A stretch of 64,000 nucleotides of DNA, taken from positions 124,001 to 188,000 of the IMG/VR virus record IMGVR_UViG_3300025000_000053. The stretch is one strand, 5' to 3'. The position numbers were made by a program, and so were the translations under genes. Below the pieces are notes generated by a model. That model was given only the letters and a program-made list of their open reading frames with translations. It was not told where the DNA came from and made no database searches. Positions 3,580 to 56,101 of the stretch are shown one piece after another. Position 1 is the first letter of the stretch. Each line of letters begins with the position of its first letter.

Positions 3580-4110
3580 ATGTTTAATTTTTTTAAAAAA
3601 GAACCATGTGACCTAACGGAACATACATTCTTTTCAAACATTAATTATTGGGTCAACATCGGTATCGACAAAATTCCTATTAATAATCCTATAAAAAAAA
3701 GAGTTGTTAGTAAATTTTTAAAAATCAAATTTCTTTCATATGACAAACACTTAAAAGAGTTCATCAAAAAAACCCTTACTATAACTAAGGAGTGTGATAT
3801 AGTTGAAATACAAAATTTATTGATTAATATTGTAAAAGACTATGAAGATGAGATTAATAAAAAAGGTATTCCTGATATATTTATAGAAAAATTTAAAAAG
3901 CTCCATGAGAATAATCTTCAAATAATATTTGATGCAATTGGTTCTATATGTACAAGTAAATTCTATGATTCTTTACATGAAAAAATGGCAGCTATACTAG
4001 ACATATTATTATTTTCATTTAGAGTTACATTTACAGATGTTGAACAAACTATCAATGAACTAAATGGTGAAATAGAAAGTGTATTAAAAGGTTCTATTTT
4101 TGATATTTAG
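3580..4110 (+). CDS. Hypothetical helical protein
   Basis: 176 aa; RBS GGAGG; AACA-N6-TA at 3534-3545. Confidence 0.6.
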   Translation: MFNFFKKEPCDLTEHTFFSNINYWVNIGIDKIPINNPIKKRVVSKFLKIKFLSYDKHLKEFIKKTLTITKECDIVEIQNLLINIVKDYEDEINKKGIPDIFIEKFKKLHENNLQIIFDAIGSICTSKFYDSLHEKMAAILDILLFSFRVTFTDVEQTINELNGEIESVLKGSIFDI

Positions 4111-4138
4111 AATAAGATGAACCTTGGAGGTTTTTATT

Positions 4139-4636
4139 ATGGAAAATCTTAATATTGAGGCATTCTTACAATATGGGGTTCTTGGTATTATAGCTTGGGT
4201 TTTTTTAAAAATGACTAGTAAACTTTTCAATTCTCAATTAGAACAATTTAAACTCTTACTTGATACAGTTATTGAAAAAGATGGTAAACCAATAAAAGAC
4301 ATTGAAGAAAGTGTCTCATTAACACAACAGATGATGAATAATCATCAAAAATACCTAATCGAAAATATACATAATTTGACAGATAAGGTTAACAGTTGTT
4401 TAAATGAAAAAGATGATATTTGGAAATTATTTATGAATCATGAACAACAATCAATACAACATATACAAGATATAAATGAACGTTTAAATGAATTTAGAAC
4501 ACTTTTAAATAGTATTGAAAAAAGATATAATATGAAATTGTCATGTGAAAAATTAGAATTTTTGTTAACACAAAAAACAGCATTGACACAATCTGAGATA
4601 AGGGACATAATTGATAATGCTAAAATTATTGAATAA
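4139..4636 (+). CDS. Holin-like protein (BhlA/UviB-type N-terminal TM helix plus coiled coil)
   Basis: GGAGG at 4126-4130 favours ATG 4139 over the track's 4124. N-terminal FLQYGVLGIIAWVFL hydrophobic helix followed by coiled coil. Confidence 0.45.
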   Translation: MENLNIEAFLQYGVLGIIAWVFLKMTSKLFNSQLEQFKLLLDTVIEKDGKPIKDIEESVSLTQQMMNNHQKYLIENIHNLTDKVNSCLNEKDDIWKLFMNHEQQSIQHIQDINERLNEFRTLLNSIEKRYNMKLSCEKLEFLLTQKTALTQSEIRDIIDNAKIIE

Positions 4637-10832: not shown

Positions 10833-12646
10833 TTAAATATTGTTAAATTCATATAAACCAATGATTTGGTCTTTTAATAGATTAAAGTCATCATTAAATA
10901 AACCATCATTTCTAGAAATAAACATAGAGGTTACTGGGTTAAAGGTCTTATTAAAGGCTTTTATATGTTTTTTAGATTTCAGGGATATGATATTTAGCAC
11001 ATCTCCGTCAAAATCTGCATTTAAAACTTTTAATATTTGTATAGGGAGACTCATTGTATATTGATCAATAATATCATTTTTAACATCTATTATCTTCATT
11101 AAAAGCATGGATCCATAATTAATTGTCATTGTGTTCATATTGTTCGTTAGACAATACAGTTCTCTTATGAACTTCCTTAGTTTTCACTAAGATACCAGAC
11201 TATATTATCATCTTTATAATAAGTTATATGAAGAGACACTTATTTCGATTTAAGGGATTTTCACCCACTCACTTGAGCCCTACTCCTAATGCTTATTTCA
11301 AAGCTAAAGGATAGTCGTTGAACCTTTCTCTAATTAATAGAGACTTGGCTGCGGATTACTCAATCCTAAAACCTTATTACTTATACCCTAGATGATTAGT
11401 CTAAGCCACTATAACATCACTATTATAGTTTAGTAGTTTTAGGCTATAAGAGATTTCCCGACAATTAAAGTGTTGATTTTCACTATAAATCACTCTATAG
11501 TGCCCCACAAAGTTTAGGGTTCCTATTGATAAGAACTTTTGGTTCCCATTTCTTTAATAAATATTTCATTATCTCATACAATTTATTATTATATACAATA
11601 GTGCCTTTATACCAATATTCATATGCTTCGTTTTCAGAAATATCATTTATTCTAGAAACATGAGTTATTATCTCATATTTATATAATTCTAAAAATGCTA
11701 AATAACCTATTTTTATTTCATTTGCTTTTAATATAGGGTCGGGAATTACAACGTTCCTAGCAGAAAAATTTAATTTACCACCAAGAATCTCCCACTTAAT
11801 ATGACCTTTTCTTTGATCTATTTGTTTAAATATTAAATAACATAATTCAATTAATTTCTTTTGAATTATACTAAGGATTTTATTCTCGTCAATATCTCCC
11901 CAATCTTTATTCTTTCTAGTCTCTATTAAATCCCTATCCTTTAATAGATTACTTAAAGAAACTATTGGATTAAACTTCTTATCCATAGAATTATAAAAGA
12001 AAGATTCACCTTTAAATTGAGAAGGTCTCAACACAGATGAATAAACTGGAATACATGAAGAAAATATTTTATCTTTTTCCTTATATATTTCATCAATCAT
12101 TTCAATCTTATTCTTTTTCTTAATTCTATAAAAATCCATTATTTCATCAAATCTTTTTTTAAACTCCATAATACCAATACCTTTAAATGGGGTTTTTCCT
12201 TGTTTATCAATTATATGACCATCCTTAGTAAATTCTTTATCATATTCAATAATTTCAAGGAAACCCTTTTCCCCAATTATTGATTTTAACATTCTATAAA
12301 ATATTGGATGTATTATACTATAGTCACCTAATTTAATCCAACCAGTAATTTTCAAATCAACATCTTTAAATTTAACTGTTGTACCACAAATATTACATTC
12401 TTCTTCATCATATAATCTCCCTTTTAATTCACCACATTCACAAGTATATCTTTCAGCAAATGCATCATCATCTTCAAAATCTGTAGCAAATAAAGGAGAT
12501 TGAATACCATATTTAGATTTTTTTTGTTTACCTTTAAAAGCAGGTTCTTTTATTTCAAATCCTTTACCTATAATAAAATCTTTTTCACACTCCTCATCCC
12601 AATTTAATTTTACTAATCTAACTTCGTCATGTTCCAAATAAAACAC
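10833..12646 (-). CDS. Phage multisubunit RNA polymerase beta' N-terminal part, spliced (exons 12646-11516 and 11126-10833, ~474 aa); probably the non-virion RNAP
   Basis: Zn-binding CECG...CNIC, GKLNFSARNVVIP, junction INRNP|TINYGS, catalytic NADFDGD in exon 2; early-type motif at 12704-12713. Confidence 0.9.
11127..11515 (-). mobile_element. Group I intron (IA-like, 389 nt, no ORF) in RNAP beta'N
   Basis: 5' exon ends in U with P1 CCCU|A:UGGGG (U.G at the splice site); P10 ACAA:UUGU; core AAUUGUCGGG, AAUCCGCAGC, GUUCAACGACUA, AUAUAGUC; terminal G at 11127; splicing restores the frame. Confidence 0.92.
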
Positions 12647-50408: not shown

Positions 50409-50420
50409 AACATCTTTATA
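50409..50420 (+). promoter_or_regulatory. Putative late promoter AACA-N6-TA (representative copy, upstream of RNAP beta)
   Basis: Also at 2430, 3534, 27016, 50237, 56171 (+) and 10279, 23260, 24242, 29922, 35991, 38536, 45935 (-); matches the AR9 late consensus as I recall it. Confidence 0.7.
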
Positions 50421-50456: not shown

Positions 50457-53400
50457 TTGATTTTTATTTCTGATATACCACATTTAAAAACCTATAAGCA
50501 AAAAGTTCTATTACCTAAAGATGAGAAGTATCCTAGTATTAATAGTGTAGTTTTTATTATTAATAATAACATACAATCATCTATAGGACTATTAAACCAT
50601 CAATTTATTAAGAATAATAACATGTATCATTTTTATTTTATGGATCACGTATATAACGGTAAATTATTTAATAGAACTTTTAGAGTTTTATATCGTAATG
50701 AAAGAAATGATATTTATAATAATATAGAAAAAGAAGTTCGATTCATACAAACAGTTCTAGATTTACATTCAGTAAATAAGAAAAATATATATGTTGATTT
50801 AATAAAACATAATAGTTTATTCTTTCAATTAAGTAAAAAAGTTAATTTTACAATTCGTATTAAAAATTATATAGATTATCTAGATAAGTTAATTAATGAT
50901 AGTCATTTTAATCAGTATAAGTATAAAACTATTTGTATTGATATTAATAGTTGGGTTAGTGATTTAAAGACTCAAATAAAAGGTAAATTAAATTTTGATA
51001 ATCCAATATTTATTATTTATTATTGTATGTATAAATACCTTGAAAAATTTAAAGAACTAGGGGATATTAATATTATTTTCTATACTAATGATAGTGTATT
51101 AAGATTAAATCCTTCATTATGTGATAAAAGCTCATATTCTTTATTTAAGAAAGAGATTATCAAAGCGTCTCCTAAAAGTTTATTAGATATGAGTGAAGAT
51201 AATATTGAAAAAGTACTAAAAAGAAAAGATGTTGCTGATAAAATAATAGGATATCTTAATGACCAACATAGATTTGTTGGTGATGATAAAACTGAAGAAG
51301 ATGAAAATTTTGAAACTAGTATTGAAGATAAAGTAGATGAAATAATTGATGCTAATAAGTTAGATAATAATAGTAATGATGAGATGTATAGTGAAGTTTC
51401 AAAAGTTATTATTAATGATGATGAAATTATAAAAAAAATTCATATGATGAATCAAGAGAATAAAGTTGGTAGAAGTACAGCTTCTATTAAAAGGGACGAA
51501 GAATTAAGAAAAAGACAAAAAGAGATAATAAAAGATAAAATAGGAATAGATAATATCTATGAAACTAATAAAGAACAACTAGATATTCCTAAATTTGATG
51601 TTACAGATAAAGTTAATACTACTAATAAAAATGTAACTACTATAAGATATCCTCAATTTGAAAAAGCTTATAATGAAGTTCTTCATGAAAAGGATTTACT
51701 TAATAATATAAAATTTTTAAATGAAAAATCTATTCCAGTTTATATTAGAGGTATAGAACGAGTTGATTCATCCGATGAATTAAATTTAAAAGAAACATAT
51801 ACTTTTGATTTAGAAGATGAAAATAGAGTTAGGCATAAATTAAAATTTGATATCCCTAAATTTATAGATGATAAATTTTTATATCTTGGTGGTAATAAAA
51901 AGATTATTATGAAGCAATTATTTATGAAGCCAGTGGTTAAGACTGGACCAGATGAAGTACAGATTTGTACTAATTACAATAAGATGTTTATTAGACGCTA
52001 TGGTAATAAAATATCATCTAAAATAGAAAAAATGAGAAAATTATTATATGAACAAAAAGAAGGTAAAGGTATTAAAGTTAAATATGGTAATAATTTATCT
52101 ATTAATAACAAATATGATACTACTATAGAATATGATGAATTATCTAAAAGCTTTACTTATATCCGTATAGGTAAAACTGAATTTTATTTTAATCAAGATG
52201 ATGCTACAAATATAGTTAAAGATAAAAAAATAAAACTTAATCAAAATGAATTCTTATTAGGTCTTATTGAAAATGGTAAAAATCCAATACCTATTACAAT
52301 TGATAAAAATACTCAAAAAATAGGCACATCTTTCGATATAGTTGACTATATACTTTCTATGTTGACACAAGGATTAGTGCAAGATTTTGATGATACTAAA
52401 AGTGGTAAGAAATTTGTTTACACTAGAGCTTATATAATGGAAAGACATGTTCCAGTAGTTTTGTTAATTTCATTCTTAGAAGGTTTATCTACAGTAATAA
52501 AAAAAGCTAATATTAAACATTATTTTTCAGATAAAAGACCTAAAGATATTACTCATAATGAGGGAATAATTCAATTTAGTGACGGGTATTTAATATATGA
52601 AAAATATCCATTTGAAAATTCTTTATTAATGAATGCATTTGCAGATATTCCAACTAAAACTTTCGAATATGGTGAATTTGATTCAAAAGATGTTTATTTA
52701 TCTTTATTTGATACTTTATATGGTAATAGGATAATTGGTAATGCCTTTCTTAACTCATATGAATTTTTAATTGATCCTATTACAAGAGAAGTATTAGAAG
52801 ATTTAAACTATCCAACAGATTATGTTTCTTTAGTTTTATATGCTAATTCTTTATTAGCAACTAATTCATATATTAAAGAAAATAATATGAATTTATATAG
52901 AATAAGATCAAATGAACTGGTTAATGCCTTATTATATAAAGAAGTTGCTAATGCTTATATTAAGTATAGAACTACTTCTTTAAATAATAATCCTGTTAAA
53001 ATTTCTGTACCACAAGATGTTATTATTAAAAAGATACTTGTTGCACAGACAGTCGAGGACTACAGCACATTAAATCCTATAACCGAAGTCGAGAAATCCC
53101 GTATGATCAGTCCAAAAGGACATTCAGGAATGAACCTGGATGAAGCGTATACACAAGATAAAAGAGCATATGATAAAACGATGCTTGGTATAATAGCTAT
53201 GTCAACTTCACCGGATTCATCGTGTGGAGTAACAAGACAACTTACATTAGAACCCAATATAAAAAATCCGAGGGGATATATCGATATAAATGACGATAGA
53301 TTAGAAATTTTAAAAGATGCAAATCTATTTTCTCCAGCTGAATTATTATCTCCTCTCGGAAATACAAGGGATGAACTTGCTATTGTCCCACTATGTAGAA

Positions 53401-56093
53401 ATATATAGTTAAAAACTCTTCTAATTGTCGGGGACATCCTTAACGCTCTTATTACCAAACTAATATAGTAATATATTAGTGGTGAAGGGTAATGCCTTAG
53501 GTATGGTAACAAGATAAGAGATTGGGTTATCCGCAGCTAAGATTCCTATAAATTTTATAGGAATAAAGTTCAAAGACTATCGAAAGCATGTTTATTATTG
53601 ATATAAAATATAATAAACAGAAGTGAGTAGAGTAGGGAAACCGAAACGGAGAGCATCTGAACACATAATGGTGAAGATGATGATATAGTCTGTCACTTAT
53701 GGAAATCATAGGTGGTTCCTGGATAGCATAAGAACAGCGATAAATAAAACTTGTCGCATTATCTAGTAATAGATAAATAAAAAATCTCCTTAATTGTCGG
53801 GAAATCTCTTAGAGCCTAAAACTACTAAGTTATATTAGTAATAATATAATGGCTTAGTCTAATCAACTAAGGTATAGTAATAAGGTTTTAGGATTGAGTA
53901 ATCCGCAGCTAAGATTCTAATATATTAGAATAAAGTTCAACGACTATCGAAGGCAAACTTATTATAGAAATAAAAATATAATGAGTTTGTTAGTAGAGTA
54001 GGGCTCAAGTGAGTTCTGAAATGGGAGACTCCTTATTATTTAATAATAAGGATGAAGATATAGTCTTATATCCTAAGGAAACTTAGGGAAGTTCATAAAA
54101 GAACTGCATAGATTAACGATCTATGTGAAATAAATGGAGTGTAAAACAATCGAAACATATCGTACCTGTAGTTAAACAATCACCAGTTTTATTATCTAAT
54201 GGAGTTGAACAAGTTATTCAATATCACTTATCTGATGATTTTTCAGTTGTAGCTAAAGATGATGGTGAAGTTGTTGAGATAGATAGTGAAACTGGTTTAA
54301 TTATTATTAAATATAAAAATGGTGAAACTAAAGTAATTGATACAAGTCCAAAAGTTGTAAAAAATGGTAAACTAAATGCCCACTTATATGGTGACATATA
54401 TGTGAATCTTCTTTAATTGTCGGGGAAACTCTTAGAACTTTTTATTATATAATAAAAAGATTGAGTAATCCGCAGCCAAGTCTCATAGTAAAAAAAATAA
54501 AGTTCATGAAGAACTCTATTACAAAGATATTGGAAAATTTTATAAAAAATCAAATACTCCATGGTATTTTATTGTATAACAAAGTTGATGATGAGTTGAT
54601 CTGAGTTCTTTTTTAATAATTTTAAAATCTATATCTATCAAATATTTCTCTAATAAGGGAAGTGTTTCTTCAATGAATATATTAAAAAGTTCTAAGTTCT
54701 TTTTAGCTATGAAAAAGTCACTAATTTTTTTGATATCATTATTATATCTTTTTAGTTCATTTTCATACCTCTGGGTAAAGAATTTTTTAGTTAATTCTAT
54801 CGATATAGGATTACAAAACTCATCACTTAACTCATTAATATTCCTCATTATAATATCTTTGTAATTAATTTCTCCTTGCTTCATTTTATTTATCATTCCT
54901 TTCTTTTTTATATTACGTAAATAATATATAAATGAAAAATAATGAAATACTATGAGAAAGGTTCAACGACTATCCCTTTGGCTTTGAAATAAGCAATAGG
55001 AGTAGGGCTCAAGTGAGTGGGTGAGAATCCCTTAAATCGAAATAGGAAGCATCCTTATGAGATGAAGATATAGTCTAGTATCTTATCGAAAGATAAGGAA
55101 GTTCATAAGAGAACTGCATAGATTAACGACCTATGTGAATATATATCGGCTGGTGGTTTCTTCTTATCAAATAAATTAACATGTAATTTGAAAGTAGGGC
55201 AAAAAATAAAAAAACGAGATATATTAGCTTATGACAGTAACTTTTTTAGTAATAGTAAATTATATGGTAATAGATTCAATATTGGTTCATTACAGAAAAT
55301 AGCGTGTATGTCCTCATACTCAACATATGAGGATTCTACTTTTGTCACTAAGAAATTATGTGAAGATATGGCAACTGAGATTGTTATGGAAAAACCAGTT
55401 GTCTTAGGTAAAAATGCTAATGTTGATTATATTGTTGAAATAGGTCAAAATGTTAGTGTTGGTGATGAACTAATTAGATTTGAAGTTTCTTTTAAAGATG
55501 AATCACTAAATAAATTTCTTTCAAATATTGGAGATGAATTAAAAGAAGAAATTAAAGCAATGGGTAAAACACCTATTAAAACTAAATACTCTGGTGTAAT
55601 TGAAGACATTAAAGTATATTCAACTGTAGATGTAGAAGAACTATCTCCAACATTAAAAAAAATTGTTAATAATTATTATGATAGAATTAATAAGAAGAAA
55701 AAAATTATTAATAAATATAATAAAAGTGATTCTGTATATAAATGTGGTATAATGTTAAATGAACCTGTAACTAAGATTGAAACTAAAGATGGTAAAGTTA
55801 AAAGTCATACTGTTAATTCAGGAGTTTTAATTATATTTTATATTAAATATAAAGATACAGTTGGTGTTGGTGATAAGATATGTTTCTTTACTGCTTTGAA
55901 ATCTATTGTCGGTGAAGTTATCCCTGAAGGATATGAACCATATTCTTTATTTAGACCAGATGAGAAGATTTCTTCAGTGGTTGCTCCAGGAGCAGTAATG
56001 AATAGAATGACCCCTTCTGTTATTCTATCAATGTTCGGTAATAAAGTATTGATAGAATTAAAACGAAAATTAAAAGATATTTATGATGAATAA
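50457..56093 (+). CDS. Phage RNA polymerase beta part, spliced from 4 exons (50457-53372, 53722-53741, 54137-54368, 55149-56093; ~1370 aa); probably the virion RNAP
   Basis: KGHSGMN, STSPDSSCGVTRQL, junctions NTRD|DSIRTAM|SVKQSKHIVP and VVKNG|AGGFFL, VGDK, NRMTPS; lacks the extreme beta C-terminus; late promoter at 50409-50420. Confidence 0.9.
53373..53721 (+). mobile_element. Group I intron 1 of RNAP beta (349 nt, no ORF)
   Basis: P1 GGGAU|GA:UUGUCCC; P10 GAUAGCA:UGCUAUU; AAUUGUCGGG, AUCCGCAGC, GUUCAAAGACUA, GAUAUAGUC; ends in G. Confidence 0.9.
53722..53741 (+). other. 20-nt micro-exon GATAGCATAAGAACAGCGAT
   Basis: Bounded by the terminal G of intron 1 and the P1 of intron 2; encodes DSIRTA plus AT of the Met codon. 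Confidence 0.85.
53742..54136 (+). mobile_element. Group I intron 2 of RNAP beta (395 nt, no ORF)
   Basis: P1 GCGAU|A:UGUCGC; AAUUGUCGGG, AAUCCGCAGC, GUUCAACGACUA, GAUAUAGUC; ends ...AAAUG. Confidence 0.9.
54369..55148 (+). mobile_element. Group I intron 3 of RNAP beta (780 nt) carrying an antisense ORF in the P6 loop
   Basis: P1 GGU|A:UGCC; same core motifs; stem TCTCATAGTA (54481-54490) : TACTATGAGA (54948-54957) encloses a ~460-nt insert; ends ...AUAUCG. Confidence 0.88.
54540..54896 (-). CDS. Orphan ORF antisense within intron 3
   Basis: 118 aa (114 aa from the second ATG); RBS-like AAGGA; early-type promoter at 54921-54930; no LAGLIDADG, GIY-YIG or HNH motif visible. Confidence 0.65.
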   Translation of the reverse strand: MINKMKQGEINYKDIIMRNINELSDEFCNPISIELTKKFFTQRYENELKRYNNDIKKISDFFIAKKNLELFNIFIEETLPLLEKYLIDIDFKIIKKELRSTHHQLCYTIKYHGVFDFL

Positions 56094-56101
56094 ATAAAAT
56101 T

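Follow-up and report, generated by a model that had tools for sequence, protein, structure and literature searches.

The DNA analyzed in this work (hereafter the window) is a stretch of 64,000 nucleotides corresponding to positions 124,001 to 188,000 of the IMG/VR virus record IMGVR_UViG_3300025000_000053, and the locus of interest is a gene for the beta subunit of a virion RNA polymerase that is interrupted by three group I introns, the third of which embeds a small gene on the opposite strand. The features recognized at this locus, with their coordinates in the window and their strand, are the following:

50409..50420 (+), AACA-N6-TA motif located 37 nt upstream of the beta start, matching the AR9 late-promoter consensus
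50457..53372 (+), exon 1 of the virion RNA polymerase beta-like gene (orthologue of AR9 g189)
53373..53721 (+), group I intron 1, without ORF
53722..53741 (+), micro-exon of 20 nt, coding for DSIRTA plus the first two bases of the next codon
53742..54136 (+), group I intron 2, without ORF, sister of intron 3
54137..54368 (+), exon 3 (MSVKQSKH...VVKNG)
54369..55148 (+), group I intron 3, 780 nt, with an insert of 457 nt in the P6 loop
54481..54490 (+), 5' arm of the P6 stem (TCTCATAGTA)
54948..54957 (+), 3' arm of the P6 stem (TACTATGAGA)
54921..54933 (-), early-promoter motif ATTTATATATTAT (the AR9 consensus is AAATATATATTAT)
54897..54902 (-), Shine-Dalgarno sequence AAAGGA, 12 nt before the ATG at 54884
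54540..54884 (-), coding sequence of 114 aa plus stop (the longest ORF starts at 54896 and gives 118 aa)
54490..54519 (-), AT-rich hairpin of 9 bp followed by U8, resembling a terminator
55149..56093 (+), exon 4 of the beta gene (Rpb2 domain 6)

The exon-intron structure was established by comparison with the intron-less homologue L018. Exon 1 aligns with residues 3-970 of this homologue, its boundary being placed after a U by alignment, and the micro-exon was recognized through the alignment with the L018/L016 stretch TRDDSIRTAM. The junction between exons 3 and 4 reads VVKNG|AGGFFLSN, as in L018, which places the end of the 5' exon at 54368 (a U) and the end of intron 3 at the G in position 55148, so that its removal restores the reading frame. 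Introns 1 and 2 match the Rfam family RF00028 with 61 and 60.4 bits, respectively. Intron 3 was missed by the scan of the whole window because of the insert, which is the only reason why its full-length score falls below the gathering score; nevertheless, both of its halves match RF00028 at sub-gathering scores (E=2.4e-4 for the 5' half and E=1.1e-5 for the 3' half), the core motifs AATTGTCGGG, ATCCGCAGC, GTTCAACGACTA, and AGATATAGTC are all present in this order, and the core aligns with that of intron 2, which passes the gathering score. The two arms of the P6 stem are complementary in 10 out of 10 positions and enclose 457 nt. The core of intron 3 is 91-95% identical to introns of L012, L013 (a sister phage), and L037, whereas intron 1 is 86-89% identical to an intron of L013 (intron A). 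The host gene is the orthologue of AR9 g189, a late virion-RNAP beta gene; the late-promoter-like motif upstream of it offers only weak support, since this motif is degenerate and, as a global marker (AACA-N6-TR), is not enriched in the window.

The preliminary description of this locus had reported a perfect P6 stem enclosing a minus-strand ORF of 118 aa, a ribosome-binding-like site and an early-promoter motif, and every one of these sequence elements was found to be present, so that the observation is confirmed. The only claim that fails is that the gene is an orphan (see below). The stop-free stretch is 138 aa long, while in 5000 Markov simulations with the composition of the window the mean was 51 and the maximum 123. 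The true start is likely to be the second ATG, at 54884, which gives 114 aa; this is the form used by gene callers, it matches the N-terminus of the protein family, and in L012 and L037 the first ATG is out of frame. The leader with the Shine-Dalgarno sequence is identical in L012, L013, and L037.

Concerning the promoter, AR9 early promoters have the structure AAATATATATTAT-(6N)-G and are read by the virion RNAP (PMC5312081). The motif in the insert matches 11 of the 13 positions of this consensus, and its 10-nt core TATATATTAT (54921-54930, minus strand) is exact. The window contains nine copies of this core, all on the minus strand and all intergenic; eight of them lie 36-72 nt upstream of a listed minus-strand ORF and the ninth is about 240 nt from the nearest one. 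Six of the nine sites have ATT and three have AAA before the core. The number of copies alone is not above chance (6.5 expected on both strands together), and it is their placement that represents the evidence. However, the start-site G of the AR9 consensus is absent, since in the window the motif is followed by TTACGT and then A, and in L012 by TTATGT and then A. At the other end of the insert, L012 has a different hairpin sequence followed by the same U8; the hairpin has too few G-C pairs to be called by a terminator scan that requires G+C, and its role as a terminator is inferred from sequence alone.

A word-indexed homology search with the single protein retrieved only the protein itself, which explains why it looked like an orphan. 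An exhaustive phmmer search against 1.84 billion representatives, however, revealed a conserved family, with 24 hits at E<1e-3 (E=1e-16 to P0002), all but one of them 105-142 aa long (P0022 is 172 aa), sharing the motif RF.NELKQYN.D..KA.D.FI..KNL..L..YIEE; we refer to it as the unnamed "NELKQYN" family. Invariant or near-invariant residues include R43, K49, Y51, N52, D60, E76, E77, and R99. The family profile scores 109.8 bits with the window ORF and 48.3 bits with gp190 of the cultured Bacillus phage BpSp. AlphaFold2 with the family alignment predicts a helical bundle with high confidence (pLDDT 89, pTM 0.81). The dN/dS ratio is 0.17-0.22 among the three closest alleles, indicating purifying selection. 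As for the distribution of the family, a tblastn search with four members against 50,697 phage records found only BpSp gp190, a scan of GTDB genomes with the family pattern found no relatives, and a scan of viral contigs for the conserved leader of the cassette found only the five known loci.

Searches for the identity of the protein did not reveal any consistent match. No Pfam, PHROG, NCBIfam, or PADLOC hit is shared by family members (the single protein and all 24 members were searched), and a sequence-profile search of the PDB gave no hits at E<=10. Foldseek gave no hit at E<=0.001 against either PDB or BFVD, the best ones being E=1.7 in PDB and E=0.96 (TM 0.62) in BFVD, the latter with an unnamed viral protein of 215 aa, and two queries of the ESM Atlas gave scores in the range of those of shuffled proteins. 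Avd and 23S rRNA intervening-sequence four-helix-bundle proteins appear only among the non-significant Foldseek hits (E 1.8-5, TM 0.29-0.34) and among the ESM Atlas structure rows (TM 0.46-0.47), which is within the noise for short helical bundles. A MazG or all-alpha NTPase identity finds no Foldseek support, and a HEPN-like Rx4-6H motif was rejected, by eye, because the histidine is not conserved and the spacing does not fit. A confident match with a degenerate endonuclease on either strand had been indicated beforehand as a finding that would disprove the idea; the insert has no similarity, on either strand, to five endonucleases encoded in sister or related introns.

One might argue that the ORF is a chance open frame, or the decayed remnant of a homing endonuclease gene, without any present function, given that the genome is very AT-rich and that single-sequence searches (Pfam, PHROGs, and the word-indexed homology search) found nothing. 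If this were the case, then a stop-free stretch exceeding all 5000 simulations, a conserved family with a confident predicted fold, a dN/dS of about 0.2, the absence of frameshifts and stops in the eight intron-borne copies, and the lack of similarity to intron endonucleases would not be expected. As far as sequence analysis can show, this possibility is already refuted by the family conservation and the dN/dS values.

Sixteen family members have a readable genomic context, and eight of them lie antisense in the P6 loop of group I introns, i.e., in the window, L012, L013, L019/L030, L037/L038 (in a likely DNA polymerase B gene, judged from a YPSII motif in the flanking ORF), L046, L047, and BpSp (gp190, in the first intron of the prohead protease gene), the last one, Bacillus phage vB_BpuM-BpSp on B. 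pumilus, being the only cultured carrier. All eight have the exact TATATATTAT core upstream, and BpSp has the perfect AR9 consensus, including the G at +1 (AAAAAA and then G). The other eight are ordinary free-standing genes in arrays of small phage genes. It must be taken into account that this sample is small and that several of the intron-borne cases come from one groundwater site. A second, unrelated ORF is lodged the same way in a sister intron.

The cassette is either present or absent in orthologous introns. L013 intron A, which carries the cassette, is the orthologue of window intron 1, which does not, whereas L013 intron B, the orthologue of window intron 3, carries in the same loop a sense-strand NUMOD4 (HNH-type) ORF of 251 aa; moreover, the AR9 g114 intron has no ORF at the site where BpSp has gp190. 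Contigs from the same community suggested that sister introns possess the same P6 stem closed by 1-8 nt, without the ORF, although the flanking matches are short and this evidence is weak. Between the window and L012 the beta exon is 96% identical at the protein level and the intron core and the cassette flanks are about 93-100% identical, but the coding sequence is only 44-47% identical at the protein level, with sharp boundaries.

On the whole, the interpretation given in the preliminary description is partly supported by these data. The idea of a group I intron with the insert in the P6 terminal loop, harboring a real minus-strand gene that is not a homing endonuclease and has an AR9-type early promoter motif, within a late RNAP gene, is supported, and "instead of a homing endonuclease" holds literally in view of the NUMOD4 ORF of L013; the orphan status is not. 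The suggestion that the protein is an anti-host or exclusion factor remains a reasonable guess, whereas the suggestion that the antisense RNA might suppress beta expression or splicing is a conjecture; the apparent terminator would confine the transcript to the insert, which argues against a long antisense RNA.

The possibility that the antisense RNA is the main product, delaying or tuning splicing or expression of the late beta mRNA, with the ORF being secondary, appears very unlikely. The transcript would be fully complementary to the P6-loop part of the pre-mRNA and, in the window, a 20-nt stretch inside the ORF is 95% complementary to the P5 region of the intron (54431-54450 against 54677-54696), a value that none of 60 shuffles reached. 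However, this complementarity is specific to the window, not being kept in L012, L013, or L037, and was rejected as a conserved regulatory pairing. Besides, the ORF is under purifying selection at the protein level while its nucleotide sequence is free to diverge (pS 0.4-0.6), free-standing homologues have no sense partner, the cassette sits in introns of at least three unrelated genes, and the terminator-like hairpin would confine the RNA to the loop, which would be spliced out anyway.

A further possibility, which we consider unlikely but cannot exclude, is that the family represents a new kind of intron-mobility protein, either a nuclease of unrecognized fold or a cofactor recruiting a nuclease or recombination to intron-less alleles, thus playing the role of the homing endonuclease genes of sister introns. 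Indeed, the gene sits exactly where homing endonuclease genes sit and alternates with NUMOD4 ORFs in orthologous introns; it shows presence or absence in orthologous introns, like an invading endonuclease gene; like endonuclease genes, the family occurs both free-standing and inside introns; one free-standing member abuts a TnpB gene; and the conserved polar residues listed above could form an active site. On the other hand, no nuclease motif or fold was found by sequence or structure searches, and the protein is only about 110 aa long and acidic (the median pI of the family is 5.3), whereas homing endonucleases are typically larger, basic DNA binders. In addition, free-standing members are tightly packed in co-oriented arrays of small genes, like ordinary early genes, and recombination between the conserved intron cores explains the mobility without any dedicated enzyme.

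Based on these data, we suggest, with reasonable though not full confidence, that the insert is a complete, insulated transcription unit, i.e., an early accessory-gene cassette that uses introns as safe harbour and vehicle. According to this model, early in infection the cassette would be transcribed on its own from a promoter of the type read by the injected virion RNA polymerase, making a small, mildly acidic, all-helical protein. Late in infection, the beta gene would be transcribed through the cassette in the sense direction, in which the terminator reads as an A-run followed by a hairpin, which would not terminate, and the promoter is inverted; the P6 stem would close the loop and the intron would splice out, so that the host gene would pay no cost. 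This would give a reason for the antisense orientation, as in this view it is the only one in which a unit with its own terminator can sit inside another gene. We take the protein, which in this view is neither a nuclease nor specific to introns because half of its relatives are ordinary genes, to be an early accessory factor acting by binding another protein, in host takeover, counter-defence, or competition between phages. The cassette might move between introns by recombination within the conserved cores flanking P6 (ATCCGCAGC ... GTTCAACGACTA) and ride along when introns spread. The anatomy of the insert, the family membership, the purifying selection, the recurrence in introns, the presence or absence in orthologous introns, and the conserved flanks around divergent alleles are what the analysis demonstrates; self-splicing, early transcription, termination, the recombination route, and the role of the protein are instead inferred, no RNA sequencing run having been found to contain this phage and no protein evidence existing for it. 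The function, in particular, is a guess drawn from context, and the strong and repeated link with introns could equally mean that the protein does something for the intron.

It can also be speculated, although we regard this as improbable on present evidence, that group I introns of AR9/PBS1-like jumbo phages act as a shuttle for antisense early-gene cassettes, the "NELKQYN" family being the first non-nuclease protein whose evolutionary success is tied to introns. It might favor the spread or retention of its intron in mixed infections without cutting DNA itself, for example by steering repair or the HNH nucleases of sister introns, or it might act as an exclusion or counter-defence factor whose alleles are swapped between introns in an arms race.

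Phage group I introns are usually seen as a ribozyme that may carry a homing endonuclease. Here, a conserved non-nuclease gene with its own promoter motif and a terminator-like end sits backwards in the same loop in at least eight intron lineages, spanning three host genes and ranging from a cultured Bacillus phage to uncultured groundwater phages. If our reading holds, introns are safe-harbour sites through which phages exchange accessory genes without disrupting essential ones, the antisense orientation has a simple mechanical reason, because intrinsic terminators work in one direction only, and annotators who join exons and ignore the opposite strand are missing genes. The arrangement can be tested directly in BpSp, and the protein family, whose confidently predicted fold has no known relative, is a worthwhile target for structural and functional work.

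As regards systems already described, the promoter-early stem-loop (PeSL) cassettes of T4-type phages are reported to consist of small accessory ORFs bracketed by a conserved early promoter and a stem-loop, with divergent ORFs between conserved flanks (Arbiol et al. 2010); this resemblance is only a lead, and PeSL cassettes reportedly lie between genes in hyperplastic regions, not inside introns or antisense within an essential gene. Phage group I introns with homing endonuclease genes in peripheral loops (of the T4 td/I-TevI type, or the NUMOD4-bearing intron of L013) share with the present one the intron type, the insertion site in the P6 loop, and the gain and loss of the ORF in orthologous introns, but here the orientation is opposite, no nuclease domain was found, the protein is acidic and predicted to be helical, and the unit is complete, with a promoter motif and a terminator-like end. 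An ORF antisense to the host transcript inside a group I intron and expressed from its own promoter is known in the case of I-DirII of the Didymium iridis rDNA intron (reviewed in PMC3073962); this system, however, is eukaryotic, located in nuclear rDNA, with a Pol II promoter, a spliceosomal intron, and a poly(A) tail, and its product is a homing endonuclease, while in the literature searched we found neither a phage example nor a non-nuclease one. [quoted passage not shown] 2017, PMC5312081); the host gene is orthologous to that of the window, the phage group is the same (PBS1/AR9-like jumbo phages), and the intron-lodged ORF has the AT-rich early promoter, independently of the late host gene. 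However, AR9 g190 lies on the sense strand and encodes an HNH/AP2 homing endonuclease, whereas the gene described here is antisense, is not a nuclease as far as sequence and structure searches show, has a terminator-like end, and belongs to a different, unnamed family.

The stretch analyzed is part of a 249,853-bp huge-phage contig from a groundwater metagenome, with a G+C content of 24%. The plus-strand gene located at 50457-56093 is the orthologue of AR9 g189, which encodes the virion RNA polymerase beta subunit; its last exon matches AR9 149149-150054 best, with 39% identity and E=1e-57. In AR9, this gene comprises six exons and is a late gene. A scan of the whole window with Rfam retrieved two group I introns at the gathering score (53368-53713 and 53732-54088) but missed the region 54369-55148, whereas a local scan hit both halves of it and its core could be aligned with that of the second intron. 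The boundaries were fixed using an intron-less homologue (locus L018, a single frame of 1493 aa), which aligns to the window in three blocks and reads ...VVKNG|AGGFFLSN... across the site, so that the intron lies at 54369-55148, after a U and ending in G. The same alignment revealed a very short exon between the first two introns, and the sister phage L013 appears to lack the second of these. The resulting features are as follows:

53373-53721, plus strand: group I intron 1
53722-53741, plus strand: 20-nt micro-exon (DSIRTA)
53742-54136, plus strand: group I intron 2
54369-55148, plus strand: group I intron 3
54481-54490 and 54948-54957, plus strand: perfect 10-bp stem of intron 3, lying between the conserved ATCCGCAGC and GTTCAACGACTA elements, which is the P6 position

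A fourth group I intron (RF00028, 53.6 bits, above gathering), which was also missed by the whole-window Rfam scan and was found only by a local one, is located on the minus strand at 11175-11526 and splits a beta-prime-like gene (ORFs 10833..11138 and 11495..12646, both with weak Rpb1 domain 2 hits).

The insert enclosed by the P6 stem is organized as a transcription unit on the minus strand, inferred from sequence alone in the absence of transcript or peptide evidence. Read 5' to 3' on that strand, it contains:

54933-54921, minus strand: ATTTATATATTAT, the early-promoter motif
54902-54897, minus strand: AAAGGA
54896, minus strand: first ATG
54884, minus strand: second ATG
54542-54540, minus strand: stop codon
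downstream of the stop, minus strand: 9-bp AT-rich hairpin, then U8 running into the P6 arm

The second ATG is the likely start, since it is the one used by gene callers, the N-terminus of the family aligns there and, in loci L012 and L037, which carry related cassettes, the first ATG is out of frame. Concerning the promoter, AR9 early promoters, which are read by the injected virion RNAP, have the consensus AAATATATATTAT-(6N)-G (PMC5312081). The window holds nine copies of TATATATTAT, all of them on the minus strand and intergenic; eight lie 36-72 nt upstream of a listed minus-strand ORF, while the ninth is about 240 nt from the nearest one. Their number alone is not above chance, and it is the placement that counts. 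The eight copies other than that of the intron fall between 7863 and 49488, seven of them 37-72 nt upstream of a listed minus-strand ORF; they are probably the early promoters of this phage, and most are preceded by a T-rich tract and ATT or AAA. The plus-strand beta gene has no such motif. It has, instead, AACATCTTTATA 37 nt upstream of its start, which fits the AR9 late consensus, but that motif is too degenerate to carry weight.

The preliminary description of a group I intron harboring an antisense gene with an early promoter motif held when the sequence was re-examined. Its interpretation was, however, only partly supported, in that the ORF, regarded there as an orphan, is not one. Single-sequence searches found nothing, but a phmmer search against 1.84 billion representatives retrieved 24 proteins at E<1e-3, all but one of 105-142 aa, sharing the motif RF.NELKQYN.D..KA.D.FI..KNL..L..YIEE..LL...R..MR. 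A profile search added more members, all from metagenomes and all unnamed. Using the family alignment, AlphaFold2 gave a model with pLDDT 89 and pTM 0.81, that is, a predicted helical bundle with helices at 12-21, 30-50, 61-85 and 91-117. None of the library or structure searches gave a significant match. The family is mildly acidic, with a median pI of 5.3.

The genomic context was readable for 16 members, several of the intron-borne ones coming from one aquifer. Eight of them lie antisense in the P6 loop of a group I intron:

the window, minus strand: intron 3 of the beta gene
L012: beta gene, same site (member P0002)
L013: beta gene, a different intron
L019/L030: beta gene (member P0004)
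L037/L038: a likely DNA polymerase B gene, judged from a YPSII motif in the flanking ORF
L046: beta gene, first intron (member P0009)
L047: member P0015
Bacillus phage BpSp gp190: first intron of the prohead protease gene, the exons of which were mapped against AR9 g114

All eight have the exact TATATATTAT upstream. In seven of them, it lies 33-41 nt from the ATG, whereas in P0004 it lies 119 nt away, with a 19-codon hydrophobic mini-ORF with its own Shine-Dalgarno site located in between (L030 3873-4000). BpSp has the perfect AR9 consensus including the G. The prohead protease gene of this phage (locus L001, 1840-4704; KT895374, 136.6-139.5 kb) is annotated as separate small genes (gp189, gp191) but really consists of three exons; the first intron holds gp190, antisense, and the second holds gp188 on the sense strand, with sub-threshold DUF559 (Vsr-like endonuclease) and zinc-finger matches. 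A second, unrelated ORF of 147 aa, with no Pfam hit and not matched by the family profile, also lies antisense in the P6 loop of another intron of the L019/L030 beta gene (L030 5277-5720, same place as the L019 intron at 3851-4539), with TATATATCAT 42 nt upstream. Antisense early cassettes in introns are therefore not limited to one protein family.

The other eight members are ordinary co-oriented genes in arrays of small phage or prophage genes, with no intron motifs nearby. Among the free-standing members, P0003 ends 9 nt before a gene coding for a 408-aa TnpB (OrfB_IS605 / Cas12f-like), the two lying at L028 4001-5565 in what looks like an SPbeta-like prophage region (YorE, integrase). In locus L045, two Pistol self-cleaving ribozymes (RF02679; 48-121 and 467-537, 46.9 and 68.7 bits) lie on the same strand as member P0008 (568-915), the nearer one ending 30 nt before its start codon. 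The analysis of the family tree revealed that the intron-borne members form two clusters, which is far fewer label changes than in shuffles.

Different lines of evidence suggest that the cassette moves. L013 intron A carries the cassette and is 86-89% identical to window intron 1, which has none, whereas L013 intron B is 91-95% identical to window intron 3, but its P6 loop holds a sense-strand 251-aa NUMOD4 ORF. AR9 has an ORF-less intron at the protease site where BpSp has gp190, and the DNA polymerase intron of L037 is 91-93% identical to window intron 3. Between the window and L012, the beta exon is 96% identical at the protein level and the intron core, P6 stem, promoter, leader and U-run are about 93-100% identical; on the contrary, the coding sequence is only 44-47% identical at the protein level, and the boundaries fall at the start and stop codons. 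Among the three P0002-type alleles, dN/dS is 0.17-0.22, while synonymous sites differ by 38-48%, far more than the flanks differ. So, old, selected alleles sit between young or homogenised flanks, and recombination within the conserved intron cores is the simplest route. In two DNA runs (X1 and X3), the intron-core segments of the region 53300-56100 have summed contig depths in the hundreds, against about 10-40 for the exons and the ORF; this intron family is therefore highly repeated in the groundwater community. Some contigs join 54484-54490 to 54948-54954 with only 1-8 nt in between, which are ORF-less P6 hairpins, although these metagenomic DNA contigs only hint that sister introns carry ORF-less versions of the same P6 hairpin.

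A further question concerns the reason for the antisense orientation. An intrinsic terminator works in one direction only; in the sense RNA, the element would read as an A-run followed by a hairpin, so that late transcription of the beta gene would pass through it, whereas in the sense orientation a cassette with its own terminator would truncate the host mRNA. AR9's sense-oriented g190 shows the alternative design. While the anatomy of the cassette, the family, its contexts and the pattern of divergence rest directly on the sequence analysis, its early expression and termination, the recombination route, this explanation of its orientation and the role of the protein are inferred.

As for that role, we favor an early accessory factor that would bind another protein, given that the protein is acidic and small, it has no nuclease features, its relatives sit in early-type gene arrays and its alleles diverge between conserved flanks. 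The main rival idea, that is, a role in intron mobility, is supported by the location and by the pattern of presence and absence, but it is weakened by the lack of any nuclease signature. A purely RNA-level role is unlikely, given the protein-level selection and the free-standing homologues. A 20-nt, 95% complementary pair does link the P5 region of the intron (54431-54450) and the interior of the antisense ORF (54677-54696, the NLELF motif), and none of 60 shuffles reached this length; however, it is specific to the window, not being conserved in L012, L013 or L037. It might compete with P5 folding in this phage, or it may be due to chance.

In the full-text library that we searched, which does not cover most subscription journals, we found no description of an antisense, non-nuclease intron gene in a phage. 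Two precedents were found: in AR9, a sense endonuclease gene with an early promoter (PMC5312081) and, in Didymium, I-DirII, an antisense endonuclease gene with its own promoter.
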